Assembly: GCA_029953675.1 (NCBI GenBank) | Contig: JAMWBK010000001.1 | Span: 3,720,001 to 3,784,000 of the forward strand | DNA length: 64,000 bases | Source: Rhodosorus marinus CCMP1338 | Lineage: Eukaryota; Plantae; Rhodophyta | Direction: 5' to 3' | Part shown: piece by piece, positions 12,732 to 47,253 of the stretch | How the letters are laid out: the number at the start of each line of letters is the position of its first letter | Numbering within the stretch: position 1 is the first letter of the stretch | The notes under the pieces: generated by a model | Told to the model about the DNA's origin: nothing | Database searches by the model: none | The model's input: the letters and a program-made list of their open reading frames with translations, nothing else | Translations under genes and position numbers: made by a program

Positions 12732-13334
12732 TCAGATCGTCTCGGCGATGACGGAGATAGCCAGCTCTCTCGCAATCCTTCCGCTCGAGCCCATGACCTT
12801 GCGACCTCCACTCTTGTTGTTCGCGCTCTTCTGTGGTTTAGCCCTGTCCTTCTGAGTCAAAGTGTGCATCTTTACGAGCAAGTCTTCAATGTCCTTGTAC
12901 CCCTTTTTCGTCGCGATCATCAGAGGCGTCTGTTTTTTGGCGTTCCTGATATTGAATTTCGCCTTGTTCCTGAGGAGAAGCTTAACAACTTCAATGTGAT
13001 TGTTCTCAACAGCATTGAAAATCGGAGTGGACCCCTTTTGGCTCTGATCCGGCTGGTCAATCACTGCACCGTGTTCAATGAGCAGCTCGGCAACCTTAAG
13101 GTGTCCTCCCTCGCATGCAAGGTGCAATGACGTGGTTCCCTTTTGCTCGAACTCTGCGTTGTGATTCAAGAGGAGCGAAACAACTTCCAGCTGATCCGCC
13201 TTGGAAGCCTCCTGCAGAGGCGTCAATCCTTTGCTTCCCTTCCAGTTGATATTGCCACCACTGTCAAGAAGTTTGATAACATCCTCGAGGCTACCGTCCC
13301 TCGCGGCAGTGCACAGCTTCTCCCTCGGCCTCAT
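12732..13334 (-). CDS. Short ankyrin-repeat protein
   Basis: About four ankyrin repeats: GLTPLQEAS, GTTSLHLAC, GSTPIFNAV, KQTPLMIAT. Confidence 0.9.
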   Translation of the reverse strand: MRPREKLCTAARDGSLEDVIKLLDSGGNINWKGSKGLTPLQEASKADQLEVVSLLLNHNAEFEQKGTTSLHLACEGGHLKVAELLIEHGAVIDQPDQSQKGSTPIFNAVENNHIEVVKLLLRNKAKFNIRNAKKQTPLMIATKKGYKDIEDLLVKMHTLTQKDRAKPQKSANNKSGGRKVMGSSGRIARELAISVIAETI

Positions 13335-14429
13335 AGTTCAATTCCTCTCGAAAAATACTATGGCTTCCTCCAACGACAAAATGGCAACACTCTCCTGCTC
13401 CTACTCCCCTCGGATCACTTGCTCTCCAACTGGCCCAACCCTTCCCAAGCTGTTCTATCCAAACATCGACTCCGTTATAAATACTCCTTCCCGACCTCTC
13501 CCCCATTGCCCAAGTGATTCACAAAAATATCAGGATCCATCGTGGCGTTCCCTAATCCAAAAAAATAAAAATAAATAGTTGATCGGTACTGCAACTCCTG
13601 CCTCACCCCTCTCCTCCCTCCCCAAGCCAAAGCCATATCTCTCTCTCTGCACAACAAAACAATCATCTAGTTGCCATCGACCTTAGACTCCACCCCAAAT
13701 GGGCAAACAGCTGCTGCCCAACCAAAGCTGACTTTCTCTTCACCATCTACAAAATTATTTCATATTTCTGAGAAATCATTAATATATTTGATAATTATTT
13801 AATTCATTTTAAATGAAACGGGTTCTTCAGGAAACGAGTCGTCAATCAATTGATGATTCTTGACGAGATCCTGGAATTCTCATCTGGGGCATTTTTCGCT
13901 TTTTTGGGATGGGAAAAAGGGGGGGGGGGGAACCTACGTCAGGTGAGCTCCAGAAATTTGAACGACTAAAACAAAACTTGCCATTTTTATAGCTTCTGGT
14001 GACTTGGTACCCAGACCTGGTTAACTACTCTAGAAAGTCTCTCCCTCACCACGAGCAAAACTAGGGATATGGCATTTTAGTAGAACAATTCAATGGGCAA
14101 GCCATCTAAACACATATTGTCGGGGGAGCGGGGGGGGGGGTGTCACTCACTGACTACTCGCTTTTTCGCAGTTTGCGGGACATCAATTTTTTTTTTCTCG
14201 TTTTGAAGTTATGTCAATCTGGATTTTGGCGCTTCTATGTGTTCATTGGCTAGATTCATGAACCGAGTGGAGTCTTACACAGATACTTTCTAAATCAAAT
14301 AGGATTCGCAACCACTTCAGTCAAAGCAGCACAATGCGTTTACTTTCAACCCCTGTGGGAACTCACTCCCCTCGCTGTGCTCTCCCCACAGCTGTGAATA
14401 TGAGCGACCATCAGACCTCGTATGCTACC

Positions 14430-21989: not shown

Positions 21990-22795
21990 GCGAATGAAAT
22001 TATTTAATCGGAGACGGAAAGAGAAAAGCCCGAGGGGAAAAACAAGACTAAGCGTGGCGAATATTCGCGCGCCTCCAACATCAAAGCAGCGTTCATAACC
22101 GACAGCAATAAACTTAAACATGTAAACTACGAGGACAGACGGTCAGGGCGTTCGCGGAACACTTCCCGAAGCTGACGAGAGCCAACGGAATCCAGAAACC
22201 CAAAGCAGCGCAATGACTAGAGGTACCAGGAGATGATCTAGAGCCAAAGCACGAATGCATGCGGGAGATAAAACCCCCGCATATTTCAACTCTTTGCGAC
22301 GTCTCATACTGGCAGCGGCAAATTCACGGGGCCTCCCACAGCCGGCAAGTAAGGGCTAACCTGGGACTAGGAACAGCAAGATCACCGTACGTCGTGACGG
22401 CGGCTATCGTCACAGTGACCCACGAGGTCCAGCCACGCGGAGTTCATCATTCTGGTACGTGTGCCACAGGCAGGGGCTTCTCACGTTCAATTTCAAGACC
22501 GGCTTGCCGCACGATAGGTCAAAGTTCGCGGTATAACGGGTTCAAGATCCGAGCATGTCGTCGGGTTCGGGCGCCTTTCAGAGCGAGGCAGCTGGGGAGC
22601 AGGTGGGCGCCAAAATCCGCGGTAGCTTCGTTTTGAGAGCAAAGTGGGCACGGCGAACCCAGCTCGGAAGGCCAGGGCGGCTCATGCAAACCGAGGTATA
22701 AACGTAGAGAAGTGCGCACTTCGAAATCTGTCAGTGTGAGTGGCGGAAAAGCGGGGACGCTCATGAGCCACTGTGAGCTGATACACCCTGCCATT
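21990..22795 (-). mobile_element. Older family B subfamily, 5'-truncated (CCHC + RLE + tail)
   Basis: ISSQWLMSVPAFPPLTLTDFEVRTSLRLYLGL..CPLC..H..C..RRH; tail with cccgagggg flanked by A runs on the plus strand. Confidence 0.85.
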
Positions 22796-22933
22796 TGTTG
22801 CATTTGATAGAACCGATACTACCCTTGATCTTAGCCAAAAGGCCGAGAAGATAGTCCTTCCACTATGATCCATGCAGCAGCCGGGGTACAACAGCCCCAT
22901 GGACTCGTCACCTCCATCTTAACCCTCTTTACT

Positions 22934-25120
22934 GGACTTTACTAGCATAGCCTGAAGCGCTACGCAAGGCGTGAAGATGAACTAATAACTAGGGAGGGAA
23001 GCATGCAACCCCAGGCGCCGATGGCGCGCCTCGGAAAGCATGTCGCTGGAATATCGCCAAAGGGAGACACTTAAACGCCTCAAGAGCGCCAAATATTCAG
23101 TAGGATGCTCAGCAAAACATTTCCGCAACCACTCTAAACCCGACTTATCCACGTGACCAAAGCTTTCCACAATGAATGGCTGGAACCGGTGAGAGCGACC
23201 CTCAGCGCAAGGCAGACTGGCCATGCTCTCAGCATACCGTCGTTCCTTAACTCTTCGAAGGGCTGAAGCCGCGGCCCCCCGGCGGCGGGCGGCTGCGGTG
23301 AGGTGGGCGCTGGCCACGGGGCAGGTAATCGCAAGGTCCACATATGTTGAGCGTCTGGCAGCAGCGTCGGAGACGAGGAGATCGGCTATACAACGGGGCG
23401 GTGCAGAGTCCGAGATGGATCTGGGCAGTTCCGACTCAACCTCAACCGTATGCCCTATCCGAGTCAAAAATTCGCTGAGGATGTACTTGAGGCGAGTGTG
23501 ACGCCTCGTACGGAGACCTCGCAACAGTCCGCAGGAACCCAGGAAGTGGTAGCCACAAGCGTCAATCCGGCTCTCACATCCCTGACAGAAAGACGGCCGA
23601 TTAGAGTGCCACGGAGCCTGTGGCAAACCGAGATAGATCCGTGCGGCAGAACGGAACTGGAAAGCATCGAGACGATGACTCAATGACGACGGTAGAGTGG
23701 TTAACCACAAGTGCGAGAGGTGGCCTCCCATGCCGCGGAGACGAGCGGCAGTGGTAGGCGGCGTGAGAGGAGAATTGAGCATGACTGTGTGAGCGGCACT
23801 GTGTTGGCCCCAGGTGAGGCTATGTTGAATTACATCAGCGCGGGAGCTCCACAATCGGCTCAAACCCGGGTAGTCTGCAACAGGGGACCCGGGGCTAGCC
23901 TCTCCGTCATCGGCAAGAACTCGGTCGAGGGGACAATCCTCAATCGCTTCAGCTCGTCCCCATATCAGCTCCCTCCAGGAATGAAAGCGGGACCGATTTG
24001 CGTCCGGCACGGCGTTGCACCTCCTGAACGCGTGTTGAAGACCATCATAAATTGTCAAAAGCGGGGGCGGCAGGGTCACTGGATCCTCGTTGGTCAAAGC
24101 TCGAGCCAAGAGGCAGGCACTTCGCATCTGGAAGGTCACCAACGTTCGCAGCGCGGTAGCCCAGGAGGCAACCGCCGCTGGCGAGCATACCAGCCCACGG
24201 TCTGCGACGCCGAATCCCCCTAATCGCAACGGTAGAGCGATCTGTGCCCGAATTAAGTCCCTGTCGGGAGCAGCTTCAAGATCGAGGGGCTCATCCAAGA
24301 GCGTTCCCCAGTGTTGCAGGGTCATTTCGTCGGCTTTAGCCGCGATCCACGAGCCCCAAGCTGGAGGCAGGCTGCGCAACCAGTAGTTGAGTCTGGGACC
24401 GGCACAAAAGCGGGAAAGCAAGCAGGCCGATTGCAGCATGCTGTCGGGTAGGTGCTCAATGGCGTCGGTGAGTTGCTTGTGCCGTGCCAAAACTCGCTCG
24501 CAGGATGCTTGGACAAAGTTGTCAGTCCCCAATCCGACGCCGTGGTGTTCGAACCCTTCACGTTCACTGATTAGTCGCAGCGTGGGTGGCAGAGAGTTCA
24601 GCGACACGTCCCTCGCGGGGAGAAAGCGACATTTTTCTGTTTCCACAGTCAAACCGACGCGACGTGCAATCGCTTCGATCGCGGTCAGTCCCCTAGCCAG
24701 GGTGTCAGGGGTGCCCAGCAATGTTACGTCATCGTGGTACGCGCAGATTCGAAGATCCGAGACCTCAGTCGAAAGACGTAAAAGTACGAGCTGTAGGGCA
24801 CAGGCATGAAGAAGAGGTCCGCAAGGGTCGCCTTGTTGGACGCCAGTATGTGCTTGAAAAACAGTGCCCTCCGTTGTCAAGTAGGGGAGGCTCTCCCCTC
24901 CGTAAATACCCGATAGAAACGGCCACGCCTCCGGAAACACACGTCGGAGCACCTCTAGCGCATGCGTCCGCGACACGCTGTTGAATGCGTTCCGGAAATC
25001 AACCACCAAGACTCCCCACTCCGGCCTACTGGCGCGTTCTAGCTCGATCCCATGGGTGATCAGTTCGCAACCCCCAGAAAATCCCACCCCTACTTGCAAG
25101 GGCGCCATAAAAGCTAAGGA
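22934..25120 (-). mobile_element. Family A CRE-like element, 3' part (RT core, CCHC, RLE, tail)
   Basis: Open 708-aa ORF 22982-25108: VDFRNAFN, GVQQGDP, AYHDD, CQGC..H..C, RH, IADLLVSD..YVDL..KERRY; tail ends AGTAAAGTCC|AGTAAAG. Confidence 0.95.
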
Positions 25121-25372
25121 AAAACAGTTTTTGGTTTCGTGAGGGTGTATGGTGCTGGCTTTTGGTGGTTTTGAGTCGCAATTGTGTTCTTCGGTGGGAG
25201 GCGCTTCTTTCTGCAGCCTTTCCCCCGCATCTTCTAGTGGTGTGGTGCGTGCTGGGGGTTGCTAGCGCCCCTTGGAGGTCATGGTGGTTTTTCTTTGGTT
25301 GCAAACGTTGGGAACAAGTTCTCTTTTTGGGGGTTTCGTGGAGGAATCGGTTTTTCACACCTTCCAATCGTT

Positions 25373-26670
25373 ATGGTTGGGGTTTCCCCACCCATTCCGG
25401 CGGACGGAGCCGTTCTCTCAGCGCGCGTGGAGCTCTGCGTGGGCGGGTTTAGTACCGCGGCCACCCTCACGGACTGCGCTGACGAGTTAGCCCATGGGAT
25501 CTGCTCGAAACTGACGAGTCTTCTTGTGACTGCTTCCCAGGAACACCGCCTGCCCCTGCTGATCGCCTATTTGGAGCGCTTCTCCGCCTCCGCGCCTGCC
25601 CCATACCCCCGGTGCCCGTCCCCGCGGATCCGCACGGTACAGCGGGGCCTGCCTCCACCCGACCCGAGCGCTCCGCTCCGGTCATTCCTGATTCCGACTG
25701 GCCTACCCCTATTCAAGGACAGACGCCTCCTGGGCCCGCGTCGGGCCCGAATCCTGCTCCCTCCAGTGCCCCACGTGCGACCTATTCGCAGGTCCTACGC
25801 AGGGGCTCTTCTGAACAACGCACGACGGCAATGGTGCGTATGATGCCACAACACATCCCTATTGACTCTTCTCGCCAACTATCTCCGTTCCACTTTGTTT
25901 GGATGACGAACGTGCGTCCCCAGACCCCCTCTCGTGGTCGGGGCCGCGCGCCCGTCCACTACCGCGATTTTCGCGACACCATGGCTTCCTCCCTTGGGGT
26001 CGCCCCGTGTGAATTCCTATATGTGGACTTCACGGGCCCTCATGCCTGTTTTCTTGTTACTGACTCGGCTTACCAGTTCCTTCAATCGCTTGTAACCACC
26101 CCCGCGCCCCAGCGCTCTGCTCTGGCCAACATGATACTGACTCGTCCTCATGTCTCTTTGCTTGTTGAGTTCGATCGTTTTGACGCCGGCTGGGTTCCTC
26201 CGTCGGCCTTGCAAAACCTGGATGCCTCGCAGGCTTCGGTTGTCGCGCTACACACTCATGCGGCGCGGCTCTCGCGCATACAGGCGAGCCTCTTCGCGCG
26301 TTTTCCTCCTCGCGGGGTCCTCCGCACCACGCTAGAGGCCTTCCTCTCCACTGAGGCCACCCTGCTGGAAGCTCACCCTGCGTTTGACCTTCTGCCGCCG
26401 ACTCTTGAGCACCCTTCCTCCCCTCGCCTTGTCTCCGAGGCTCGTGACACCGACATGGCAGAAGCACCATCGGCCTCTCCGAATCCGCTGGCTCTGGACA
26501 CCCTCAGTCAAGACTCCGCTGCTGAAAACCCTGTGTCTACTTTCTTCAGGTCTTTTAGTTCCTTCGTGCGCCCTCCACGTAAGCGTCGTGCGGCTCCTGA
26601 GCCTCCCTCCGAGGCACCTCCTCCGGATATTCGATCTGCCTTCCCGACTGAGGGGAGGCCCGATGTCTGA
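25373..26670 (+). CDS. Family B ORF1 (one frameshift in a C-run near 25606-25610)
   Basis: Pieces 25259-25843 and 25612-26670 join into the open ORF seen at 41884-43296. The likely start MVGVSPP matches subfamily B' MAGVSPP. Confidence 0.8.
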
Positions 26671-26716
26671 GTCTTCCTCCTCCGCGTGCGTGTCGTCCCG
26701 GTTACCCCTGTTTACC

Positions 26717-26839
26717 GAACGAACGAATGGTTTAATCGGAGGCTGAAAAAAAAAACCCCGAGGGGAAAAAAAGACTAAGCGCGGCGAAGTACTCGCGCCT
26801 CCAACATCAAAGCGGCATTCATGCGCCACAGCAGGAAAC
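26717..26839 (-). repeat. Inverted copy of the element's own 3' terminal about 123 nt
   Basis: Reverse complement of 29869-29992 with one mismatch seen; the same insert is at 41715-41838. Confidence 0.95.
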
Positions 26840-29800
26840 ACCCCAGTGACCGCTCAGCCTGGCATGAGCGTGTTCTCTCGTGGTTTTCGCACCTTGTCGC
26901 CTCCTACCCGGACGGTTCCCTTCCCCTTTGTCGTCAGAGCACGGCCGTACGGCTCCCTCGTCGACTTCATAAGCCCCTAGGATTGGTGTTGGATTTTCTC
27001 TGGCAGCAGGTCGCCGCGAACCCTCACTGCTCTCTTCGCTGGGAACTCTTGTTCTTTTTTCCCCGCCTCGTGCTCACCTCCTCTACCGTCCCCCTCAACC
27101 CACATCCTCGCCGGGTCCACCCTCGCCGAAAACTGCAAATGTTCCTCTCCGGCGACTTTGAGGACCTCGAACGTCTTTATTTCGCTTCTCTCTCTTCCTT
27201 TTCTCCTAGTGATCCCTCAGCTTTTAGGTCTTCTCGACAGAATCGGGCGCGTCACGCGGTGGCAGGCGGTGATCTGCGGCGGGCAGCCGGGATCCTCCAG
27301 CAGCGGCAACCTGTGGTTCCATACTCCGATGATCTTTCTTCACCGCTCCGTTTGCTCTTTCCCTCGGAAGGCTTCCCTTGGGACTCCTCGTTTGAATCAG
27401 TGTTGGAAGAGTACCGCGCCGCGCCACATCCCAGTGCGCGGTTAGTGGTCAATCTGGAGGCGGTGCGTGAGTTGGTTCATGATGCTCCGAAGGGCCGTTC
27501 CCCAGGGCCCTCGGGGCTGCGGGTGGAATATCTCCGTTTCTTAAGTGATGAAGGTTTGAAGGCGTTGGCGTGGGTGGTCGAAGCGCTTGTGAATGGTGAT
27601 CCCCTGTGTGAGTGTGCGTGGTTCTTGGTCGGGCGTTCTCAGTTGTGTCTGCTTTCGAAGCCCGGCCACACGGCCTCGAGCCCTGCTATTCGCCCTATTG
27701 GCCTGGTTGAGGTGGTCCGCAAATTGGCGGCGCGATGGTTAGTGAAAATCCTGGTTCCCGAATCCCGTCGTTTCTTTGGGCACGTGCAGTTAGGCGTGGG
27801 CTATCGTGGTGGCTGTGAGTTGTTGTCTGTTTTACTCCGTTCGGAAATGGCGTACTCCCCAGATTCTGGGCTCCTCTCTGTAGATTTTACCAATGCGTTC
27901 AACCGCGTCTATAGTCCGGCTCTCATGCACGTGGTGCGCGAAGTCTTCCCTGTAGGCTTTCCCTTTGTTAGTAGACTTTATTCTCCGCTTGGTCGTGGGG
28001 CTACCTATGACACCCTTGGCGCTTCCTCTCACACGTTTGCGGCGCGCACAGGGGTACAACAGGGTGATCCCTTGTCCCCTTTCCTACATGCCTGTGGACT
28101 ACAACTCGTCTTGCTTTGTCTTCGCTCCGAATTCCCGCAGGTTCGTACGGTTGCATACCACGACGACGTGTGCCTCCTGGGGCCCCCTGATACTCTAGCA
28201 CTCGCTTATGATCGTCTCCGCTCCTTGGCTTCGCGGGTTGACCTGGAGGTTAATCATCACAAATCGTTCTACTGGGGAGGTGTAGCTGCACAAGAGCAGC
28301 AGGTACCTGCGTCGTTCCAGGATATTTGGAGACCGGATGGTTTTGTCCACTTAGGCATCCCCTACGGGTCGCCGTCCTTCGTTGAAGGCGAGTTGCTGCA
28401 GCTCCTCGGTAAGCACAGACAGCTGGTTGCAGAGCTTCGACGGCTACCTCCGGGCTTTCTCCAGTGCTCGTTGTTGCTGTTTCGGTATTGTTGCAGTCAG
28501 CGGTTAACCTATTGGCTTCGCTCACTTCCAACTCATTGGGGCCGGTGGTTGGCCACTCGTGCGGATGCTGAAAGTTTCCGTGACCTGGGGTATTTTCTCG
28601 ATGAAGAGCTGAGCGCTCTGCCGCGACCCACCTGTGATGTTGTGCGCGCCCAGGTAGGCCTCCCATTGCGATTGGGGGACTGGGCCTCTGCAATCGTGTT
28701 GTGGTCCAACCTGCAGCCGCAGTAGGGGCCTGGGGAACCGCACTTCCCACTTTGAGCAGCTTGGGTATCTCGAAGTTCCGCAATTTGATGGCGAGCCTCT
28801 CGCGGGGTGTCTTGCTTCCCAGCGTACCGGAAAGCGCCCAAGACTTGTTTCTGGAGCTCCAAACCGCCCTGAATTCCTGTACTAGTCTCCCCGAAACCGT
28901 TCAACCCCGTCTTCCTGACTGGCGAGCTGTATTTGACCGCTCTCGAGGCTCCGCCCCGGGGATTCGTCCTGCGCCTGAACCTGTTCTAGGGGAGATTGAC
29001 CCAGTGGTTGCCGCAGAAGAAGAAGTTCCAGTTGATCCTCCTGATGATTCCCAGCGCGCTGGGAGCCGAGCTCAAGCACGCACGGATGCGCTGCAAAATA
29101 TCCTTTCTTGGGACTTGCACCGTGCTGCATATGGCCGACTCCTCGCGCAGATGGTCTCATCTTCTCGCGCTCGCGCCCGCCTACGTAGTCTTGGAGGGGT
29201 TATTAGCTCTCAGTGGCTCATGACCGTACCAGCCTTTCCGCCACTCACACTGTCGGATTTCGAAGTGCGTACTTCACTGCGCTTATACCTCGGCTTACAT
29301 CAGCCCCCTTGGCCGTACGAGATGGGTTCGTCGTGCCCTCTCTGCTCTCAGACTGAAGACAACGCAGATTTTGGCGCCCACCTGCTCGCTAGTTGCCCGG
29401 CGGTGAAAGGTGCTCGAACCCGCCGCCACACACGGATCTTGAACCTGTTATACCGGGAACTTCGGCCTATAGTCCGGCAAGCCGGTCTGGAAATCGAACG
29501 TGAGAAACCTTTACCCGTCGCGGACTTTCAAAATGATGAACGCCGTGTAGCCGACCTGGTGATCACCTGTGACGACAGCCGCCGTACCACATACGTTGAT
29601 CTTGCTGTTCCTAACCCTCAAGCTAGTCGTTATCTCCCGGCTGCGGGGGAGCGCCGTGGATCTGCCGCCGCCAGCATGAGACGCCGCAAAGAGATCAAAT
29701 ACGCGGGGGCTTTGTCTTCCCCTGGTGTTCGTGCTTCGGCACTAGCACATCGCTTGGTACCCCTGATCATTGAGTGCTTTGGGTTCATGGACTCTGTTGG

Positions 29801-29933
29801 TTCTCGCTGGCTTCGGGAGTTGTTCCGCGAACGCCCTGACCGTCTTCAATCGTTGTTTACCCGTTTAAGTTTCCTGCTGTGGCGCATGAATGCCGCTTTG
29901 ATGTTGGAGGCGCGAGTACTTCGCCGCGCTTAG
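26821..29933 (+). CDS. Family B ORF2: RT-CCHC-RLE (one frameshift in a G-run near 28674-28678)
   Basis: SPGPSG, IRPIGL, VDFTNAFN, GVQQGDP, AYHDD, CPLC..H..C, VADLVIT..YVDL..KEIKY. Native ATG at 26665 overlaps the ORF1 end (gATGtcTGA). Confidence 0.9.
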
Positions 29934-29992
29934 TCTTTTGTTCCCCTCGGGGTTTTTTTTTTCAGCCTCCGATTAAACCATTCGTTCGTTCG

Positions 29993-30490
29993 GTGAAGGC
30001 GCTGGCATAGCCACCTCCCGGCTAACTTCCGTAGGCTCTCCACCATCTCGATCGGCCGGAGACGCGGGTGGGCCGGCTGGTGGTCAGGTTTCGTGAGCAA
30101 GCAAAGCTGTGCCTGCCGGAGATGTTCCCATGGCGCAGACGCACCCGATACGCCCTGGAACAACTTGTTAAGGATCCTCAGAAGCGCGCTCTGGCCAGGC
30201 TGGCTCAGGGCCTGCAATAGCTCTGTTCTTAGTCCGGAGGGTCCGGGACAGCGTCCCCGACGCGAGGTACGAAGCAAATCCTCCAGGTCAGACTCACTGA
30301 GCGTCAGATCGATGCGAAACCTGGCCAACTCCGGACGGTCCAAGAATACCTCGAATTCAGGGGACAAATCCACGTCGGACTCAGGGAACAAAGACGACAC
30401 CGTCTGGGCGAGACTATCATCGTAGGGGAGGACTGGCGCCTGGCCCTCCAAAACCCGCGCCGCTCGACTTAAATCGCCCACTGCTACCAA
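29993..30490 (-). mobile_element. Family A CRE-like element, 5' part of RT (continues at 25120)
   Basis: VAVGDLSRAARVL..CPGPSGLRTE..LRPIEMVESLRKLAGRWL, collinear with family B ORF2. Confidence 0.9.
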
Positions 30491-31634: not shown

Positions 31635-34600
31635 CCCTAGCAATCGTGGCCACTCCTGCATTCTCTCGCCAGCGCTCTCCGTTTCATCTCGTCTGGATGA
31701 CGAACGTGCGCCCCCAGACCCCTTCTCGTGGTCGGGGTCGCGAGCCCGTTCACTACCGTGATTTCCGCGATACGATGGCCTCGTCACTTGGAGTCGCTCC
31801 ATCTGAGTTCATCTATATGGATTTCAATGGACCTCATGCCTGTTTCCTCGTCACAGAGTTTGCTTATGAATGCCTTACCTCGCTTGTCGCCATCCCTGAG
31901 CCCCAGCGCTCTGCCTTGCAAACACGACACTGACTCGTGCCCACGTCTAATTGTTTGTTGAGTTTGACCGCTTCGACGCAGGATGGGTTCCCACGTCGGC
32001 GCTGTAGAGCCACCCTTCCACGCAAGCTCCTGTTATCGCACTGGAAACTCATGGTGCGCGACTTTTACGCATCCAGTCGAGCCTCCTTGAACGCTTCCTG
32101 CCCCCCGTGGAGTCCTCCGCTCGGCGTTAAGAGGACTTCCTCGCCGCTGAGGCCGCTCTGATGGAAGCTCATCCGGCCTTTTACCTCTACCGAGCGACTC
32201 CTGCCCGCCCTCCTCCCCTCGACATGTGGGCGGCCCCATCGTGCTCCTCGAATCCGCTGGCTTTGGACACCCTCAGCGAAGACTCCGTTCCTGACAATCC
32301 TGCATCTGCCTTCTTTAGGTCTTCTAGTTCCTTCGCCCGTACACCACGTAAGCCCCGTGCCGCCCTGAGTCACCCTCAGAGGGCCCCCCACCGGATACCC
32401 GCAACGCCTCCGCCGCTGAGAGGACGCCTGATGTCTGGGTCCTCTTACCCCGCCCGGGTGTCACCCGTGTCCGTCCTGTTCGCCGATGCCCCCTCCACCT
32501 GGCGCGAGCGCGTTTTCTCGTGGTTCTCTGACCTTATCGCCTCATTACCGGGTGGTGCCATTCCCTTGTGCCGTCAGAGCCCAACTGTACGGCTCCCTCG
32601 TTGTCTGTACTAACCTTTTGCGTTGATCTTGGACCTCTTATGGCAGGAAGTTTCCGATCACCCTCAATGCTCTCTTCGCTGGGATCTCCTTTCCTTTTTC
32701 CTCGCCTCGTGCTCACTTCCTCTACTGTCTCGAGCACTTCGTCTTCCCGCCGTATCCACCCTCAGCGCAAGATGCATTTGTTCCTATCCGGTGACTTTGA
32801 AGAGCTCGAGCGCCTCTACTATGTTTTCCTCTCTTCCATCTCTACCTGTCCCCTGTCAGACCTCAAGTCTAGCCAACAACGGGCACGTCACGCTGGGCAG
32901 GCGGTGATCTCTTGAGGGCTGGGAGTATCCTCCAGCAACGGCAACCTGTGGTCGAGTATTCAGACGATCTTGCTTCTTCGCTACACTCGCTTTTTCCCGC
33001 AGCAGGCTCTGGGTGGGACCCGTCTTCTGACGCGGAGGTGGAAGCGGTCCAAGTAGCGTCCAATGAAGGCGAGCGGCTGGTGGTCACCTCTGAGGCTGTG
33101 CGTGGGCTGATCCAGCCTGCTCAAAGGGTCGTTCTCCTGGGCCCTCGGGTTCGCGGGTGGAATACCTCCGTTTTTTGGGTGATGAGGGTATGAAAGCGTG
33201 CGCGTCCATGTTGAAGGGAGTCGTCAATGGCGATCCTTTTTGTGATCGTGCATGGTTTTTACTGGACGCAGCTATCTTTGCTCTCCAAGTCGGGTCGCAC
33301 TACTTCGACTCCAGCCCTTCGCCCTATTTTCATGGCGGAAGCGGTCCGTAAACTGGCAGCTCCTTGTTAGGTCCAGATTTTGGTCCCCGAATCCCTTTGC
33401 TTTTTTGGGCACGCGCAGTTGGGCGTGGGCTATCGCGGCGGCTGTGAATTGCTATCAGCACTCCTTCGCTCGGATCTGGCCTACTCACCGGACTACGGGT
33501 TATTATCTGTAGACTTTAGCAATGCTTTTAATCGTGTCTCTCGATCAGCCATTATGCATGTGGCGTGCCAGGTCTTCCCGGTAGCTCTTCCCTTAGCTAG
33601 TACTCTTCACCCTTTGACGGGCCAAGGGCCAACTTATGAAACCCTCGGCCATTCCTCATACTCCTTTGAGGCGCGGACCGGGTTCAACAGGGTGACCCGT
33701 TGGCGCCGTTTTTGCACGCCCGTGGGCTTCAGGTCTTTCTGCTTAGCCTGCGTTCAGAGTTCCCGGAGGTCCGCACAGTGGGTTAAAAGGATGATTTCTG
33801 AATCATTGGGCCTCCAGATACCGTCGCGGCGGCGTACGATCGTGTCCGTACACTGGCATCCCTCGTCGATCTCGAAGTCATCATGCGAAGTCGTTCTACT
33901 GGGGAGGAGCGGATATTCAAGAGCAGCAGGCCCCCGCGCGTTTCCGAGATAGTTGGCGTCGGGCAGGGTTTGTCCACCTAGGCATCCCCCATGGGTCCGC
34001 GTCGTTCGTGGAGGGTAAGTTGTCGCAGATTCTGAGCAAGTACCTGTAGCTGGCCTCGGAGCCCAGTCTGCTGCCTCGCGGATTCTTGCAATGCTCGTTG
34101 TTGCTTTATCGATATTGTTGCAGTCAGCGGCTCACCTATTGGTTCCGCTCGCCCCCGAATCGCTGGGGCCGGTGGCTGGCAAGCCGTGCGGACGACGGGA
34201 GCTTTGACTAGCTGGGATATTTCTTAGATGTCGAGTTGGGCATCTTCCGCGCCCCAACCGTTATATCGTTGGCGCCGAAGGGGGCCTACCCGTACGCCTG
34301 GGCGGTCTAGGCCTTTGTAACCGAGCACATCGCTTGGTACCCCTGATCATTGAGTGCTTTGGGTTCATGGACTCTGTTGGTTCTCGCTGGCTTCGGGAGT
34401 TGTTCCGCGAACGCCCTGACCGTCTTCAATCGTTGTTTACCCGCTTAAGTTTCCTGCTGTGGCGCATGAATGCCGCTTTGATGTTGGAGGCGCGAGTTCT
34501 TCGCCGCACTTAGTCTTCTTTTCCCCTCGGGGTTTTTTTTTTTCAGCCTCCGATTAAACCATTCGTTTCGTGTAACCGAGCTAGGCCTCTGTAACCGAGC

Positions 34601-36648: not shown

Positions 36649-37032
36649 GTATATGCATATAGATATTATATATATTACATAGATACATACTCACAACCGT
36701 CCATATGTGTTGTTTGTTTCCCCAAAAGTAGCTTAAGGCCGCACTTAGAGCGGCCTCTTTGCTTTCCAGTCATCTGTGCTCCGGACGCTCGCTCTGTCCT
36801 TTTCTGTCCCTGCACGTCACTTGCTGTATAAAGTACCTGTGTGTATATGCATATAGATATTATATATATTACATAGATACATACTCACAACCGTCCATAT
36901 GTGTTGTTTGTTTCCCCAAAAGTAGCTTAAGGCCGCACTTAGAGCGGCCTCTTTGCTTTCCAGTCATCTGTGCTCCGGACGCTCGCTCTGTCCTTTTCTG
37001 TCCCTGCACGTCACTTGCTGTATAAAGTACCT
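36649..37032. repeat. Tandem direct duplication, 194-bp period
   Basis: The unit starting gtatatgcatatagat occurs at 36649 and 36843; each holds the hairpin AGGCCGC-ACTTAGA-GCGGCCT. Confidence 0.95.
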
Positions 37033-38488: not shown

Positions 38489-38641
38489 AGTAACCCCCTG
38501 TGGCGCATGAATGCCGCTTTGATGTTGGAGGCGCGAGTACTTCGCCGCGCTTAGTCTTTTTTTCCCCTCGGGGTTTTTTTTTCAGCCTCCGATTAAACCA
38601 TTCATTCAGTAACCCTGTGCTAATAAAGCCAGTAACCCTGT
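38489..38641 (+). mobile_element. B tail plus 12-nt A-type tail at one site, with a triplicated target
   Basis: AGTAACCC(CC)TGT at 38489; B tail; AGTAACCCTGT at 38608; GCTAATAAAGCC; AGTAACCCTGT at 38631. Confidence 0.8.
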
Positions 38642-38804: not shown

Positions 38805-39232
38805 GTGATCACCGGTGACGACAGCCGCCGTACCACATACGTTGATCTTGCTGTTCCTAACCCTCAAGCTAGTCGTTATCTCCCGGCTGCGGGGGAGCGC
38901 CGTGGATCAGCCGCCGCCAGCATGAGACGCCGCAAAGAGATTAAATACGCGGGGGCTTTGTCTTCCCCTGGTGTTCGTGCTTCGGCACTAGCACATCGCT
39001 TGGTACCCCTGATCATTGAGTGCTTTGGGTTCATGGACTCTGTTGTTCTCGCTGGCTTCGGGAGTTGTTCCGCGAACGCCCTGACCGTCTTCAATCGTTG
39101 TTTACCCGCTTAAGTTTCCTGCTGTGGCGCATGAATGCCGCTTTGATGTTGGAGGCGCGAGTACTTCGCCGCGCTTAGTCTTTTTTTCCCCTCGGGGTTT
39201 TTTTTTTCAGCCTCCGATTAAACCATTCGTTC
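38805..39232 (+). mobile_element. Young family B 3' fragment (RLE C-terminus + tail)
   Basis: Near-identical to about 29559-29990; imperfect TSD TAAAAAA(AAC)GTG. Confidence 0.9.
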
Positions 39233-39234
39233 GT

Positions 39235-40680
39235 AAAAAAGTGTGCCTGTGAAGAGTTCTTGACAACACAGCAGAGGAACGCTGTGTTCTCAAGAAGTCT
39301 TCCGGCGGTTTGTGATGGGTTACGGAGTTGGGTTGGGTGAATTTTTGGTTATCATATTCTTTGCTCGTGGGAGGCGCTGCCTTCCGTCGTCTTTGCCCAG
39401 GGTTGTTTGGGTGTGTGGCTTGTCGGCGGACTTTCTCTCCTTCTCTTGGGTTGTGGTGGAGGTTTCGGGGTGCTTTGTATTGGGTATTAGCCAGTCTTTG
39501 TGGGGCTTTTGTCGTGAAACTTCTCCTCGCCACACTCTTTTGTGATGGCTGGGGTCTCCCCACCTCTTCCGGTGGCCGGCGCTGCCGTCTCTCCGCCCGT
39601 GGAGCTGCAAGTGGGCGCATTCAGCACCCAGGCCACTCTCAGCAACTCCCAATTCTGCTGTACCCCTCCAAATCTCCGGCCAAAACACCCCCCTGAACTT
39701 TCCCTGAGGCCGAATCCTGCCCCTGCAAGTGTCTCTCAGCCCTCCTATTCCCAAGTCCTTCGTCGGGGCTCCTCTGAAGAACCCACGACGGCCATGGTGC
39801 GTATGATGCCTTCCCCCGTGGCCACGCCTGCATTCTCTCGCCAGCTCTCTCCGTTTCATCTCGTCTGGATGACGAACGTGCGCCCCCAAACCCCTTCTCG
39901 TTGTCGGGGTCGCACGCTCGTTCACTACCGTGATTTCCGCGATACGATGGCCTCCTCACTTGGAGTCGATCCATCTGAGTTCATCTATATGGATTTCAAT
40001 GGAACTCATGCCTGTTTCCTCGTCACAGAGTTTGCTTATCAATGCCTTACCTCGCTTGTCGCCATTCCTGAGCCCCAACGGTCTGCCCTTTCAAACACGA
40101 CACTGACTCGTGCCCACGTCTCATTGTTTGTTGAGTTTGACCGCTTCGACGCAGGATGGGTTCCCGCGTCGGCGCTGCAGAGCCACCCTACCACGCAAGC
40201 TCCTGTTATCGCACTGGAAACTCATGGTGCGCGACTATCACGCATCCAGTCGAGCCTCTTTGCCCGTTTCCCTCCCCCGTGGAGTCCTCCGCTCGGCGTT
40301 AGAGGACTTCCTCGCCGCTGAGGCCGCTCTGATGGAAGCTCATCCGGCCTTTTACCTCTACCGAGCGACTCCTGCCCGCCCTCCTCCCCTTGACATGTGG
40401 GCGGCCCCATCGTGCTCCCCGAATCCGCTGGCTTTGGACCACCTCAGCGAAGACTCCGTTCCTGACAATCCTGCATCTGCCTTCTTTAGGTCTTTTAGTT
40501 CCTTCGCTCGTACGCCACGTAAGCGACGTGCCGCCCTGAGTCACCCTCAGAGGGCCCCCCACCGGATACCCGCAACGCCTCCGCCGCTGAGAGGACGCCT
40601 GATGTCTGGGTCCTCTTACCCCGCCCGGGTGTCACCCGTGTCCGTCCTGTTCTCCGATGCCCCCTCCACCTGGCGCGAGG
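39235..40680 (+). mobile_element. Subfamily B' 5' part (5'UTR, ORF1, start of ORF2)
   Basis: ORF 39542-40321 is homologous to B ORF1; the stretch is very similar to 31635-32510. Confidence 0.9.
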
Positions 40681-41030
40681 CGCAGGTTGGCTTTTGATAG
40701 CGTTGTTGATCGTGTTGCCGTTGTGCGAAGACGGTTGCAGCTTCCGGTAGGGTCGTCATAGTTCGAGTTTCGTCCGGTGTAATAAGGTCGGCTGGCAGGG
40801 GTGGATTCTTTCCGTATACTAGCTCGAATGGAGAAATTCGGTTGCTCCTGAGATTTGGCGATTCCACGTAAGTCCTGCCATCGGTAGAAAATCTGCCCAG
40901 TTCGACGTTGTTGCATTATATCGTAGGTACGTCTCCAAAATTTGATTTATCCGCTCCGTTTGTCCATCCGTCGGCGGATGATACGCGGTATAACTTTTCT
41001 GCTTCACCTTCAAAGAACAGAGATATTCCA
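40681..41030 (-). mobile_element. Displaced integrase-core fragment of gypsy element 1
   Basis: SYTAYHPPTDGQTERINQILETYLR and SPFELVYG. Confidence 0.85.
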
Positions 41031-43430
41031 CCCGCAGCCCCGAGGGCCCTGGGGAACGGCCCTTCGGAGCATCATGAACCAACTCACGCACCGCCTCCAG
41101 ATTGACCACTAACCGCGCACTGGGATGTGGCGCGGCGCGGTACTCTTCCAACACTGATTCAAACGAGGAGTCCCAAGGGAAGCCTTCCGAGGGAAAGAGC
41201 AAACGGAGCGGTGAAGAAAGATCATCGGAGTATGGAACCACAGGTTGCCGCTGCTGGAGGATCCCGGCTGCCCGCCGCAGATCACCGCCTGCCACCGCGT
41301 GACGCGCCCGATTCTGTCGAGAAGACCTAAAAGCTGAGGGATCACTAGGAGAAAAGGAAGAGAGAGAAGCGAAATAAAGACGTTCGAGGTCCTCAAAGTC
41401 GCCGGAGAGGAACATTTGCAGTTTTCGGCGAGGGTGGACCCGGCGAGGATGTGGGTTGAGGGGGACGGTAGAGGAGGTGAGCACGAGGCGGGGAAAAAAG
41501 AACAAGAGTTCCCAGCGAAGAGAGCAGTGAGGGTTCGCGGCGACCTGCTGCCAGAGAAAATCCAACACCAATCCTAGGGGCTTATGAAGTCGACGAGGGA
41601 GCCGTACGGCCGTGCTCTGACGACAAAGGGGAAGGGAACCGTCCGGGTAGGAGGCGACAAGGTGCGAAAACCACGAGAGAACACGCTCATGCCAGGCTGA
41701 GCGGTCACTGGGGTGTTTCCTGCTGTGGCGCATGAATGCCGCTTTGATGTTGGAGGCGCGAGTACTTCGCCGCGCTTAGTCTTTTTTTCCCCTCGGGGTT
41801 TTTTTTTTCAGCCTCCGATTAAACCATTCGTTCGTTCGGTAAACAGGGGTAACCGGGACGACACGCACGCGGAGGAGGAAGACTCAGACATCGGGCCTCC
41901 CCTCAGTCGGGAAGGCAGATCGAATATCCGGAGGAGGTGCCTCGGAGGGAGGCTCAGGAGCCGCACGACGCTTACGTGGAGGGCGCACGAAGGAACTAAA
42001 AGACCTGAAGAAAGTAGACACAGGGTTTTCAGCAGCGGAGTCTTGACTGAGGGTGTCCAGAGCCAGCGGATTCGGAGAGGCCGATGGTGCTTCTGCCATG
42101 TCGGTGTCACGAGCCTCGGAGACAGGGCGAGGGGAGGAAGGGTGCTCAAGAGTCGGCGGCAGAAGGTCAAACGCAGGGTGAGCTTCCAGCAGGGTGGCCT
42201 CAGTGGAGAGGAAGGCCTCTAGCGCGGTGCGGAGGACCCCGCGAGGAGGAAAACGCGCGAAGAGGCTCGCCTGTATGCGCGAGAGCCGCGCCGCATGAGT
42301 GTGTAGCGCGACAACCGAAGCCTGCGAGGCATCCAGGTTTTGCAAGGCCGACGGAGGAACCCAGCCGGCGTCAAAACGATCGAACTCGACAAACAAAGAG
42401 ACATGAGGACGAGTCAGTATCATGTTGGCCAGAGCAGAGCGCTGGGGCGCGGGGGTGGTTACAAGCGATTGAAGGAACTGGTAAGCCGAGTCAGTAACAA
42501 GAAAACAGGCATGAGGGCCCGTGAAGTCCACATATAGGAATTCAAACGGGGCGACCCCAAGGGAGGAAGCCATGGTGTCGCGAAAATCGCGGTAGTGGAC
42601 GGGCGCGCGGCCCCGACCACGAGAGGGGGTCTGGGGACGCACGTTCGTCATCCAAACAAAGTGGAACGGAGATAGTTGGCGAGAAGAGTCAATAGGGATG
42701 TGTTGTGGCATCATACGCACCATTGCCGTCGTGCGTTGTTCAGAAGAGCCCCTGCGTAGGACCTGCGAATAGGTCGCACGTGGGGCACTGGAGGGAGCAG
42801 GATTCGGGCCCGACGCGGGCCCAGGAGGCGTCTGTCCTTGAATAGGGGTAGGCCAGTCGGAATCAGGAATGACCGGAGCGGAGCGCTCGGGTCGGGTGGA
42901 GGCAGGCCCCGCTGTACCGTGCGGATCCGCGGGGACGGGCACCGGGGGGTATGGGGCAGGCGCGGAGGCGGAGAAGCGCTCCAAATAGGCGATCAGCAGG
43001 GGCAGGCGGTGTTCCTGGGAAGCAGTCACAAGAAGACTCGTCAGTTTCGAGCAGATCCCATGGGCTAACTCGTCAGCGCAGTCCGTGAGGGTGGCCGCGG
43101 TACTAAACCCGCCCACGCAGAGCTCCACGCGCGCTGAGAGAACGGCTCCGTCCGCCGGAATGGGTGGGGAAACCCCAACCATAACGATTGGAAGGTGTGA
43201 AAAACCGATTCCTCCACGAAACCCCCAAAAAGAGAACTTGTTCCCAACGTTTGCAACCAAAGAAAAACCACCACGACCCCCAAGGGGCGCTAGCAACCCC
43301 CAGCACGCACCACACCACTAGAAGATGCGGGGGAAAGGCTGCAGAAAGAAGCGCCTCCCACCGAAGAACACAATTGCGACTCAAAACCACCAAAAGCCAG
43401 CACCATACACCCTCACGAAACCAAAAACTG
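41031..43430 (-). mobile_element. Second family B copy, 5' half only, including the inverted self-tail
   Basis: Near-identical inverted match to 25125 to about 27535; ends at PSGLRVEYL; 5' flank AGTAAAACGAAT. Confidence 0.95.
41884..43296 (-). CDS. Family B ORF1, uninterrupted
   Basis: Open 470-aa ORF (likely about 430 aa from MVGVSPP). Confidence 0.85.
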   Translation of the reverse strand: MLAPLGGRGGFSLVANVGNKFSFWGFRGGIGFSHLPIVMVGVSPPIPADGAVLSARVELCVGGFSTAATLTDCADELAHGICSKLTSLLVTASQEHRLPLLIAYLERFSASAPAPYPPVPVPADPHGTAGPASTRPERSAPVIPDSDWPTPIQGQTPPGPASGPNPAPSSAPRATYSQVLRRGSSEQRTTAMVRMMPQHIPIDSSRQLSPFHFVWMTNVRPQTPSRGRGRAPVHYRDFRDTMASSLGVAPFEFLYVDFTGPHACFLVTDSAYQFLQSLVTTPAPQRSALANMILTRPHVSLFVEFDRFDAGWVPPSALQNLDASQASVVALHTHAARLSRIQASLFARFPPRGVLRTALEAFLSTEATLLEAHPAFDLLPPTLEHPSSPRPVSEARDTDMAEAPSASPNPLALDTLSQDSAAENPVSTFFRSFSSFVRPPRKRRAAPEPPSEAPPPDIRSAFPTEGRPDV

Positions 43431-43439
43431 ATTCGTTTT

Positions 43440-43680
43440 ACTGAGTATCCTGTTATTATCAACGCAAAATCTCCAACTCCCGGATTCAAAAGTTTTTCCG
43501 CCCAGATATGTTGGGCCTTTCAAAATTCCACGCAAAGTTGGCGAAGTTGCGTATCAACTGGAGCTCGGAGGGAATCATCAAATCCATGACGTTTTTCACG
43601 TATCGCTTCTACGTAAGTTTAACGGAGCCGAACCAGAAATGACCGAAGTGACAAGGGCACTCTTACCAGACACCCAACAA
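43440..43680 (+). mobile_element. Inverted integrase C-terminal (GPY/F) fragment of gypsy element 1
   Basis: Plus strand encodes LLSTQNL..PRYVGPFKIPRKVGEVAYQLELG..IHDVFHVSLLRKF. Confidence 0.85.
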
Positions 43681-46070: not shown

Positions 46071-46126
46071 AAGGTTTCCACTGAAGGGAATCCGAACGCC
46101 TTTATCAGCAACAGTGTTGGCGTCTC

Positions 46127-46903
46127 CTACTGCTGCTCCTCTTTTAACTCCTGTAGCTTCGGGGGTGCGGACTTGGACACTGTCGGGTCCCTATCAGGGT
46201 TGTTCCAGCAGATCCTTTGTATATGCCCCTTTTTTCCGCAGTAGTTGCAAACAATGTTGGTGTAGTTACGCTTCTGCAGCGCTTGCGTTCCGGGTTGGTA
46301 AATGCGTCCAGACCTGGTTCCCCTGCTTACAGTGGTCTGGGGCGTTGCCATTTTTTGGGGAAATTTCTCTTCCCATCTGGAAGGTTGGCTGGCTGCCTCA
46401 GCTCCCTCAATTTTTAGGGCAAGTGCCTGTGCCGCCTCAAAATCCTGCACGTCCTGTATGTAGATGTATTTCTTGACCTCGGGTTTAAGGCCTTCGACGA
46501 AGCGGTCGAATTTCTCTGAATCCGAAATCTCTCCCACCTGGATCAGGCATGTGTTGAAGTATGCCGTATACGCTGCGACCGTCGTCTTCTGCTGCGCCTT
46601 TGCAAGTTGCTGTTTCGCGCGGATCTTGGCGTCTGCCGGGTAGAACTGGGCTTTGAGCGTACATTCGAAGCCCTCGTAGGTCGTTGGTTTCCGGTCGTCC
46701 GGAATCAGTGACCACCAGTATGAGGCGTCGCCAGTCAAATAACCTTCTGCTAGGGTGATTCGGTATTCGTCGTCGTCGACGGGTAGCCGCGCCAGTTTGA
46801 AGTATGTTCTTAGTTGATTCAAGAACGTACTTATGACTAGGGCGTCACGTCGCCCGTCATAGGCTTTCGGCTGCGGAGCCTGCATCTTGATGAGTGATGC
46901 CAT
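46127..46903 (-). CDS. Ty3/gypsy gag, gypsy element 1
   Basis: YDG.R, LTGDASYWW, FVEGLKPEV, zinc knuckle CNYCGKKGHIQRIC. Confidence 0.9.
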   Translation of the reverse strand: MASLIKMQAPQPKAYDGRRDALVISTFLNQLRTYFKLARLPVDDDEYRITLAEGYLTGDASYWWSLIPDDRKPTTYEGFECTLKAQFYPADAKIRAKQQLAKAQQKTTVAAYTAYFNTCLIQVGEISDSEKFDRFVEGLKPEVKKYIYIQDVQDFEAAQALALKIEGAEAASQPSRWEEKFPQKMATPQTTVSRGTRSGRIYQPGTQALQKRNYTNIVCNYCGKKGHIQRICWNNPDRDPTVSKSAPPKLQELKEEQQ

Positions 46904-47253
46904 CTGCGGGTTGTCAGGTTGTCAGGTTGTCAGGTTTTGGGCTCCCTTCTGCTGCTCCTTGCGATGAGACCAAATTGATACGTTCTTCGTTAGCGCGTGT
47001 CGGTGATCCAAAATACTTTTAAATTCCCTTTTGTTTTTATCTTTTTTCTATCTTGGATACCTCCCTCTACTCTAATCTTAAGGAGGAAGGTCGTAACTTC
47101 CGTATTTATAGCCTTCGGGTTCATGACTTGGGTATGTTAGACTACTATTATTAGCCCTGTCCGTACAATATCTTGCCCACTGGGCGCATCATAGACTTAC
47201 TATATTTTGTACCCATGGTGGTTATTTTTAGCTCACCAATATGTTAGCCAGAT

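Follow-up and report, generated by a model that had tools for sequence, protein, structure and literature searches.

A LINE of the red alga Rhodosorus marinus carries, at the junction of its two reading frames, a 128-nt block derived from the 3' end of its own family in antisense orientation. We interpret this block as a nested, 5'-truncated insertion by which a member of its LINE family entered, through target-primed reverse transcription (TPRT), an element that was later copied together with the block, and we put the probability of this reading at roughly 85%. We favor it because an empty-site paralogue exists, because the exact 3' terminus is included in the block and because many similar truncated fragments occur. 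A true 3' terminus, here with a variable (ATTC/GTTC)n tail, combined with an arbitrary internal cut-off is the signature of 5'-truncated TPRT products. The sequence analyzed was a stretch of 64,000 nt (the window), which contains two insert-bearing copies of the element, family B, on opposite strands.

The insert occupies positions 26716 to 26843 on the minus strand of the window. The original prediction, that about 123 nt of antisense 3' end lie at 26717-26839, held with a minimal correction: the final 124 nt of the element (29869-29992) recur in reverse complement at 26716-26839, with 123 of 124 positions matching. The insert thus reads as the reverse complement of ...GTTTCCTGCTG...CCATTCGTTCGTTCG, and its antisense content consists of the last 21 ORF2 codons plus the stop, the ~59-nt 3' UTR and the (TTCG)n tail. 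The remaining 4 nt (ACCC, 26840-26843) are filler or belong to an ambiguous duplication of 3 bp. Its partner is the sense 3' arm at 29869-29992 (plus strand), which comprises the last part of ORF2 together with the 3' UTR and tail. A repeat search returned slightly longer arms (26711-26839 and 29869-29997; 129 nt, 98% complementary), the outer 5 nt of which are native or flank sequence that matches by chance. The insert is 100% identical to the family 3' ends at 39114-39234 and L001:12738-12857, and the single mismatch between the arms sits in the 3' arm of the insert-bearing element itself.

The bounds of the insert follow from a third copy, L001:8114-12857 (R. marinus GCA_029953675.1), whose identity over the full element is 97.5-98.3% and from which precisely positions 26716-26843 are missing. 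Because the empty site in L001:9630-9765 reads CTGTTTAC directly joined to CAGTGACC, with ORF2 in frame from its native ATG, the insert measures exactly 128 nt. The filled junctions read CTGTTTAC followed by CGAACGAACGAATGG and CAGCAGGAAACACCC followed by CAGTGACC; the corresponding empty junction is CCCCTGTTTAC followed by CAGTGACCGC. In all, three copies with an ORF1-ORF2 junction were examined, two filled and one empty, and the empty one also differs by a deletion of 22 nt and an insertion of 28 nt and contains stops. At 32330-32600 and 40500-40700, more distant copies belonging to family C are likewise without the insert; the inverted repeat is missing from families A and C as well as from the L001 copy.

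The full-length insert-bearing element, copy 1, extends from 25125 to 29990 on the plus strand (3' end uncertain by ~3 nt). It begins with CAGTTTTTGG, a 5' terminus common to copy 1, copy 2 and L001:8114, and its tail is ...CCATTCGTTCGTT. Joining 25124 to 29991 in silico restored a minus-strand family-A RT reading frame that copy 1 interrupts; since its removal restores the host ORF in frame, copy 1 is a clean unit insertion. ORF1 (25373-26670, plus strand) has no recognizable domain, with no match in Pfam and no relatives in a search of a 5.8-billion-protein database. In copy 1 it is frameshifted at 25605 (C5 versus C6); copy 2 and L001 both have an intact ORF1. ORF2 as now readable (26821-28725, plus strand) has 634 codons including RVT_1 (Pfam, E=1.4e-10) and loses its frame at a G-run at 28673 (G5 versus G6 in a related copy). 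The C-terminal part of ORF2 (28701-29933, plus strand), in a shifted frame, is consequently out of frame in copy 1 as assembled. The R. marinus assembly is Nanopore-based, and RNA-seq has been published for the strain, CCMP1338 (PMC10250338). Both 1-nt frameshifts of copy 1 fall in homopolymers; with six bases in each run, copy 1 would be an intact filled element.

ORF2 was compared with known proteins. The best PDB matches of the RT were L1 ORF2p and R2 proteins (E about 1e-9). Downstream of it, a CCHC/RH motif (C..C..H....C / RRH) gave a single-sequence phmmer match to an R2 protein at E=1.2e-3. A profile built from seven sequences (family B, family A and five metagenomic relatives) matched the R2 proteins 9nl3, 9dou and 8gh6 at E=1e-6 over the CCHC knuckle plus a restriction-like endonuclease (RLE), and the D (ADL / RPDG), D (VDL / WDF) and K..KY columns of the RLE were present in the alignment with R2. 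An N-terminal APE endonuclease was not found, Pfam giving RVT_1 alone in ORF2 and nothing in ORF1. On the strength of RVT_1, the likeness of the RT to L1 ORF2p and R2, and the likeness of the CCHC and RLE region to R2, the element is a bona fide RLE-type LINE with two ORFs, in which the RT is followed by a C-terminal CCHC knuckle and RLE. A search of the 5.8-billion-protein database returned no relatives of the C-terminal domain, an exact-protein look-up of the 634-aa ORF2 returned no record, and a metagenome scan for the family 3' end gave 0 matches. An Rfam search of 24900-30200 at E<=1 returned nothing, that is, no HDV-like ribozyme and no known 3' UTR element, and minimum free energy folding of the 3' end revealed no structure above that of shuffled sequence (z=0.36).

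Insertion of the block exchanged the start codon of ORF2. In the empty copy, the native ATG reads directly into ORF2 (MSESSSSACVSSRLPLFTSDRSAWHE...). This ATG overlaps the ORF1 stop (ATGTCTGA). As predicted, the native frame of copy 1 now stops at 26746 after 27 codons; position 26665, which had been taken for its start, is the last base of the ATG (26663-26665). The resulting stub (26663-26746, plus strand) ends at a TGA inside the insert (26744-26746). Since 128 nt is 2 mod 3, the native ATG is uncoupled from the rest of ORF2. The replacement, ATG CGC CAC AGC AGG AAA at 26821, is indeed in frame with the rest of ORF2 and opens the 634-codon ORF (26821-28725) that holds RVT_1. It is the sole in-frame ATG within the insert; the closest upstream in-frame stop is a TAA at 26776, and the A10-CCCCGAGGGG-A7 tract said to precede the ATG is present at 26747-26773. 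Near its C-terminus, ORF2 has a Met codon within a CATG, and the new ATG is this CATG read in reverse. With the swap, 18 poorly conserved N-terminal residues were lost and 8 new ones gained. An in-frame ATG from the antisense tail is a matter of luck, with a chance of roughly one in three. The claim that the RT stays translatable can be upheld only conditionally: copy 1 is frameshifted by 1 nt before the endonuclease, copy 2 ends at element position 27538, and the new ATG lies in a potential duplex (see below).

Truncated fragments similar to the insert are frequent. The window contains 5'-truncated 3' fragments of the family of 111, 244, 341, 431 and ~790 nt, and one such fragment lies inside the ORF2 of another LINE. 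The 3' junction flank of the insert, GTAAAC, resembles those of other copies (GTGAAG, GTAACC and AGTAACC); over seven 3' junctions we found a tendency towards GT(A/G)A(A/C), yet within different sequences. The target-site duplication at the insert does not exceed 3 bp (GGT, as read on the strand of the insert), with 2-4 untemplated bases, and some other fragments of the family have duplications of about 6-17 bp. The lack of a clear duplication (0-3 bp plus 4 nt of filler) is an observation against a nested insertion.

R2 is the mechanistic model for target-primed reverse transcription of non-LTR retrotransposons (PMC10499050). In the reading favored here, a full-length copy already in the genome would have been nicked where ORF1 meets ORF2, and the nick would have primed reverse transcription of a transcript of the same family. 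The transcript would have entered in antisense orientation, synthesis would have halted after 124 nt (a severe 5' truncation) and the 4 extra bases would have been joined at the junction. This event would have uncoupled the native ORF2 ATG and allowed the ATG of the antisense tail to take over in frame. The modified element, acting alone or served in trans, would then have been mobile enough to be copied at least once, giving the two copies in the window.

Copy 2 (41016-43430, minus strand) bears the insert at 41711-41838 and lies inside a rearranged Ty3/gypsy integrase, 13.5 kb from copy 1 and inverted relative to it. It runs from the 5' end to element position 27538 only. The insert junctions of the two copies are identical. 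Over ~2400 positions the copies differ 8 times (7 substitutions, 1 indel), and 24 sites over 2.3 kb set both of them apart from L001. The two are sister copies from a single insertion event. Their upstream flanks are unrelated, being a family-A RT for copy 1 and a Gypsy integrase fragment for copy 2. Given the 8 differences, the canonical 5' end and the unrelated flanks, the filled element has probably gone through one or more rounds of retrotransposition. The 3' half of copy 2 is missing and its region is scrambled, with integrase junctions at 40680/81, 41015/16, 43433/34 and 43672/73, so that a retrotranspositional origin of this copy is read from its 5' terminus. Gene conversion between copies 1 and 2 may have occurred. 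By hand, we worked through single inversions as the cause of the present context of copy 2 and found none that restores a colinear Gypsy integrase. Neither the window nor L001 contains a second family-A copy spanning the insertion site of copy 1.

Alternatively, the block could have been inserted once in the genome and the second filled copy have arisen at the DNA level, by inverted segmental duplication, replication template switching, gene conversion or an assembly artefact, in which case the filled element would never have retrotransposed. The short distance and inverted arrangement of the copies fit this explanation, as does the extent of copy 2, a 5' piece spanning 25125-27538 of the element and of a kind that TPRT by itself cannot produce. 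Copy 2 also lies amid inverted and displaced Gypsy integrase fragments and a 3'-truncated family-C element, in a region that was clearly either rearranged at the DNA level or misassembled. However, copy 2 begins at the same nucleotide as copy 1 and L001 and has an unrelated flank, and a random breakpoint would rarely fall there. Moreover, 7 substitutions and 1 indel between the copies exclude an artefact of collapsed or duplicated reads. We consider a purely DNA-level origin of copy 2 unlikely. The original prediction had named, as the finding that would speak against it, an insert confined to these two copies and spread by DNA-level duplication or misassembly: in the reachable sequence (window plus L001) no further insert-bearing copy was found, but the two copies do not look like a DNA-level duplicate.

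The block could also have been generated within one retrotransposition event if the RT had jumped from the RNA onto the 5' end of the cDNA it was making and then returned to the RNA. The block is compatible, in its orientation and in reaching the very 3' end, with a copy of the beginning of the first-strand cDNA, and the 4 extra junction bases resemble template-jump additions. This route calls for two precise template switches at one and the same RNA position, however, and the insert matches the tails of other members perfectly yet is mismatched with the 3' end of copy 1 itself. The flank of the insert is like the family's other insertion flanks and points to an endonuclease nick, and short truncated insertions are demonstrably common in the window. 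We regard this route as very improbable. Two further candidates were rejected. Twin priming of the L1 type likewise leaves a LINE insertion with an inverted piece of the same element, but there the piece derives from the element's interior, makes up the 5' portion of a single truncated insertion and borders directly on the target flank. In the present element the inverted segment stems from the extreme 3' end and lies inside a full-length copy, preceded by 1.6 kb of colinear 5' UTR and ORF1 that reach the full-length 5' terminus. Built-in repeats of the DIRS/Ngaro or Penelope type, which go with a tyrosine recombinase or a GIY-YIG nuclease and are shared by all members, do not fit an element whose nuclease is an RLE and whose repeat neither the L001 copy nor families A and C contain.

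A regulatory reading takes the inverted 3' end to be a selected, functional feature of a new sub-lineage, regulating the element through a long-range panhandle of ~124 bp. With 124 nt each and 3 kb between them, both arms belong to the sense strand of a single element and hence to one potential transcript. The two arms are predicted to pair at -259.5 kcal/mol, compared with about -30 kcal/mol for each arm alone. The panhandle of about 120 bp proposed earlier is thus energetically plausible. The filled lineage is the youngest-looking one seen, to judge from the few differences between its copies. Both ORFs of copy 1 are open except for the two homopolymer differences; the empty L001 copy has indels and stops. 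The in-frame ATG is preserved. Against selection, the insert is missing from the 98%-identical copy and from related families, and the only two copies that carry it stem from a single event. The arms show no compensatory change that would speak for pairing, their one mismatch lying in copy 1's own 3' arm, and an in-frame ATG is expected by chance in about 1/3 of cases. Furthermore, ATG 26821 lies within a panhandle arm and would be buried in the duplex if the panhandle formed; a translatable RT and a panhandle are therefore opposed inferences. A functional panhandle strikes us as very improbable, and the same holds for the specific roles that might be given to it: a limiter of copy number through dsRNA or siRNA, a circularizer that would place the 3' UTR beside the ORF2 protein as it is being made, or a control on the translation of ORF2. 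It also holds for the roles suggested at the outset, namely a silencing trigger, a self-regulator or an altered template-recognition structure. Equally improbable is the wider proposal that a red-algal RLE LINE took up its own 3' UTR in antisense and kept retrotransposing as the youngest sub-lineage with a working panhandle. A literature check on RNAi in red algae yielded nothing specific to Rhodosorus. On the nested-insertion reading, the inverted repeat would be a tolerated by-product, not a device.

The block shares with known nested 5'-truncated LINE insertions the exact donor 3' terminus and tail, an arbitrary 5' cut, an empty-site paralogue and sibling fragments nearby. It differs in that the target was a full-length copy of the same family, entered in antisense so that an intra-element inverted repeat arose, in that a replacement start codon was supplied by chance and in its minimal target-site duplication (0-3 bp). 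RLE-type LINEs comprise the R2, R4, NeSL, CRE, HERO and Utopia groups (PMC4640811, PMC5678591). Like them, the element encodes a CCHC knuckle and a PD-(D/E)XK-like endonuclease behind its RT, has no detected APE domain and ends in a short repeat tail instead of poly(A). Unlike them, it has two ORFs, the first without detectable relatives. A sequence-specific target site is typical of many, though not all, RLE clades; the 3' junctions of this family showed a GTRAA-like flank tendency and no strict target site. Identity of the element to R2 is low (profile E=1e-6). These features describe a hitherto undescribed family in R. marinus with two ORFs, an orphan ORF1, a ~59-nt 3' UTR and a (ATTC/GTTC)n tail.

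Mu killer of maize is a rearranged DNA transposon with kilobase-scale arms whose silencing activity was shown genetically (PMC3440606). Both, like hairpin-forming inverted TE duplications in general, are transposon derivatives with an inverted duplicate of part of themselves; the present case is a LINE with arms of 124 nt separated by 3 kb. The element offers a natural example of a LINE that survived a self-inflicted nested insertion and was seemingly copied again: a 128-nt antisense fragment ruined the ORF1/ORF2 start-stop overlap and yet donated a usable predicted start codon. If both arms were transcribed together, the double-stranded RNA could feed small-RNA silencing of the family. Should the panhandle give rise to small RNAs or affect ORF2 translation, the element would be a self-made retrotransposon counterpart of Mu killer.

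The window is transposon-rich nuclear DNA of the red alga Rhodosorus marinus, taken from a 31-Mb assembly (GCA_029953675.1) that was built from Oxford Nanopore reads and contains 15% repeats (PMC10250338). The family-B non-LTR retrotransposon considered here (copy 1, ≈ 25125-29990, plus strand) begins with CAGTTTTTGG. Its ORF1 (25373-26670, plus strand) had no Pfam domain and found no relatives in a protein-database search. ORF2 encodes a reverse transcriptase (RT; Pfam RVT_1) resembling L1 ORF2p and R2 proteins by PDB comparison, and its C-terminal part contains a CCHC knuckle and a restriction-like endonuclease (RLE). As a single-sequence query, this C-terminal part matched R2 at E=1e-3; a seven-sequence profile matched R2 proteins at E=1e-6, spanning both knuckle and nuclease. 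With RT, knuckle and RLE and with no APE domain, the element shows the defining features examined for RLE-type LINEs. The 3' UTR (≈ 59 nt) contains T7-CCCCTCGGGG-T10, and after it comes a short (ATTC/GTTC)n tail, variable in length, instead of poly(A). An Rfam search of the element gave no match, and the 3' end folded alone was no more structured than shuffled sequence.

A repeat search detected two inverted arms in copy 1 (26711-26839 and 29869-29997; 129 nt, 98%). The homologous core comprises 26716-26839 and 29869-29992 with 123 matches in 124 bases, bearing out the original prediction that 26717-26839 is the antisense of the element's last ≈ 123 nt. The native ORF2 ATG (26663-26665) overlaps the ORF1 stop codon (ATGTCTGA) and, as predicted, its frame closes after 27 codons, at TGA 26744-26746. 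The antisense tail does supply a replacement: ATG 26821, in frame with the rest of ORF2, opens an RT ORF (26821-28725) with 97% identity to the R. marinus protein NDN08_000219, whose gene lies on contig JAMWBK010000013.1. This is the sole in-frame ATG within the insert, and an in-frame TAA lies upstream at 26776. It arises from a CATG read in reverse; the same CATG holds the Met codon of ...LLWRMNAAL near the ORF2 C-terminus.

The state before insertion could be read from another R. marinus locus, L001, where a full-length copy without the block (L001:8114-12857) shares 97.5-98.3% identity with copy 1 from end to end. Alignment of the two gave the empty site as ...CCCCTGTTTAC|CAGTGACCGC...; the filled site exceeds it by exactly 128 bases (26716-26843), made up of 124 nt of antisense tail and ACCC. 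In L001 the native ATG leads directly into ORF2 (MSESSSSACVSSRLPLFTSDRSAWHERVLSW...). The block is absent as well from more distant copies of the related family C (32330-32600 and 40500-40700). It starts at the element's true 3' terminus, with tail repeats, and stops at an arbitrary internal point, as would be typical of a 5'-truncated product of target-primed reverse transcription (TPRT). The insert matches two other tails, at 39114-39234 and L001:12738-12857, with 100% identity, and differs from copy 1's own tail by one mismatch. Next to its 3' junction lies GTAAAC, which is similar to several other family-B 3' flanks (GTGAAG, GTAACC, AGTAACC).

We conclude, with a probability of about 0.85, that the insert arose by nested insertion: a family-B transcript went in, antisense and severely 5'-truncated, where ORF1 meets ORF2 in a family-B copy already in place. 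The weakest point of this case is that no clear target-site duplication (≤ 3 bp) surrounds the insert; in its other sequence features the block looks like a nested TPRT product. Twin priming and built-in inverted-repeat elements (DIRS, Ngaro, Penelope) were also considered as sources, and both were rejected on failed tests.

A second filled copy (copy 2, 41016-43430, minus strand) has the same insert junctions. Seven substitutions and one indel separate the two filled copies, and 24 sites set both apart from L001, which makes them sisters rather than an assembly duplicate. All three copies start at the identical 5' nucleotide. The upstream flanks of the filled copies are unrelated: copy 1 adjoins a family-A RT and copy 2 a Gypsy integrase fragment. 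Copy 1 splits a family-A LINE (22003-25124 and 29991-≈ 31400, minus strand), and joining 25124 to 29991 restored the interrupted minus-strand RT frame (RKLAGRWLCQRLHRFSLAFMAPLQVGVGFSGG) with the length of the homologous family-B stretch. Copy 1 therefore went in as a clean unit that essentially neither duplicated nor deleted target sequence. Together, sister status, common 5' start, unrelated flanks and clean insertion argue that at least one round of retrotransposition probably followed acquisition of the insert.

Gene conversion between the filled copies, which lie inverted and 13.5 kb apart, is a possible alternative, and DNA rearrangement or misassembly has clearly affected the copy 2 locus. 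Copy 2 ends at element position 27538 within a scrambled patch that reads, in minus-strand order, Gypsy pol with integrase part 1 (to 43673), the integrase C-terminal part, inverted (43434-43672), copy 2 itself, integrase part 2 (41015-40681) and an antisense, 3'-truncated family-C piece (39710-40680). The Ty3/gypsy gag-pol concerned occupies 40681-43672 and 43673-46921 (minus strand). A single inversion was rejected as the cause, since none restores colinearity; the integrase may have been scrambled by complex rearrangement or by misassembly of the Nanopore reads. The patch also contains a chimeric 304-codon ORF (40819-41733, minus strand) in which 239 N-terminal ORF2 residues, starting at the insert-derived ATG, continue in frame into integrase part 2 (...GLRVEYL|CSLKVKQKSYTAYHPPTDGQTER...).

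At least five further 5'-truncated family-B 3' fragments lie in the window. Those on the plus strand measure 111 nt (38498-38607, 8-bp target duplication), 431 nt (38805-39234) and 244 nt (34324-34567); the last is inserted in sense within a family-C ORF2 with a ≈ 17-bp duplication, CTAGGCCT(T/C)TGTAACCG, and an additional GTAACCGAG beside its tail. On the minus strand are fragments of 341 nt (57278-57618) and, with 80% identity to family B, ≈ 790 nt (22003-22789). Across six 3' junctions (29990, 26716 on the minus strand, 34567, 38607, 39234 and L001:12857), tail length differed and the downstream flank often began GT(A/G)A(A/C), a sequence pattern suggesting that the family-B endonuclease has a loose preference for its target. 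Three family-B-like 3' regions lie head to tail at 57278-58262 (minus strand; period ≈ 514 nt); their inner units are cut within the CCCCTCGGGG hairpin, a pattern that points to tandem duplication rather than separate insertions. Immediately after the empty copy, short 3' pieces of related LINE families follow in head-to-tail order (L001:12854-12957 and 13323-13536), and such stacking is recurrent in this genome. The window also holds a perfect 190-nt direct tandem repeat with 4-nt spacing (36649-36838 and 36843-37032).

The insert's 128 nt (2 mod 3) uncouple the native ORF2 start. Starting at ATG 26821 exchanges 18 N-terminal residues, which show little conservation from family B to family C, for eight (MRHSRKHP). 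The ATG sits 19 nt from the insert's truncation point and had a roughly one-in-three chance of being in frame, so it needs no special explanation by itself. In the assembly, copy 1 is broken by two frameshifts: compared with copy 2 and/or L001, it has C5 for C6 at 25605 in ORF1 and G5 for G6 at 28673 in ORF2, upstream of the endonuclease. It has no other disabling indel besides the insert. Each frameshift comes from a one-base difference in a homopolymer run, and in an assembly made from Nanopore reads both may be sequencing errors; copy 1 might then be whole but for the insert. The ORFs of the empty copy are interrupted, and that copy carries a deletion of 22 nt and an insertion of 28 nt.

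Pairing between the arms was predicted at -259.5 kcal/mol; folded alone, the arms reached about -29 and -35 kcal/mol. A full-length sense transcript could thus form a duplex of ≈ 124 bp around ORF2, and the proposed ≈ 120-bp panhandle is energetically plausible. The accompanying claim that the RT stays translatable held in part: the in-frame ATG opens the RT ORF, but copy 1 is frameshifted before the endonuclease and the ATG lies inside a duplex arm. Translation and panhandle formation would therefore oppose each other unless the duplex melts. Functionally, the nearest comparison, by analogy only, is with Mu killer of maize, in which part of MuDR is duplicated in inverted orientation and the hairpin RNA produced silences the family (PMC3440606). 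Small RNAs have been reported from other mesophilic red algae, not from Rhodosorus (PMC12026948). We consider it very unlikely that the panhandle is under selection as a self-regulating device of an active sub-lineage. The insert is most likely the work of an ordinary mechanism, and the result is neat: the element gained a replacement start codon and an internal inverted repeat, and it probably remained mobile.
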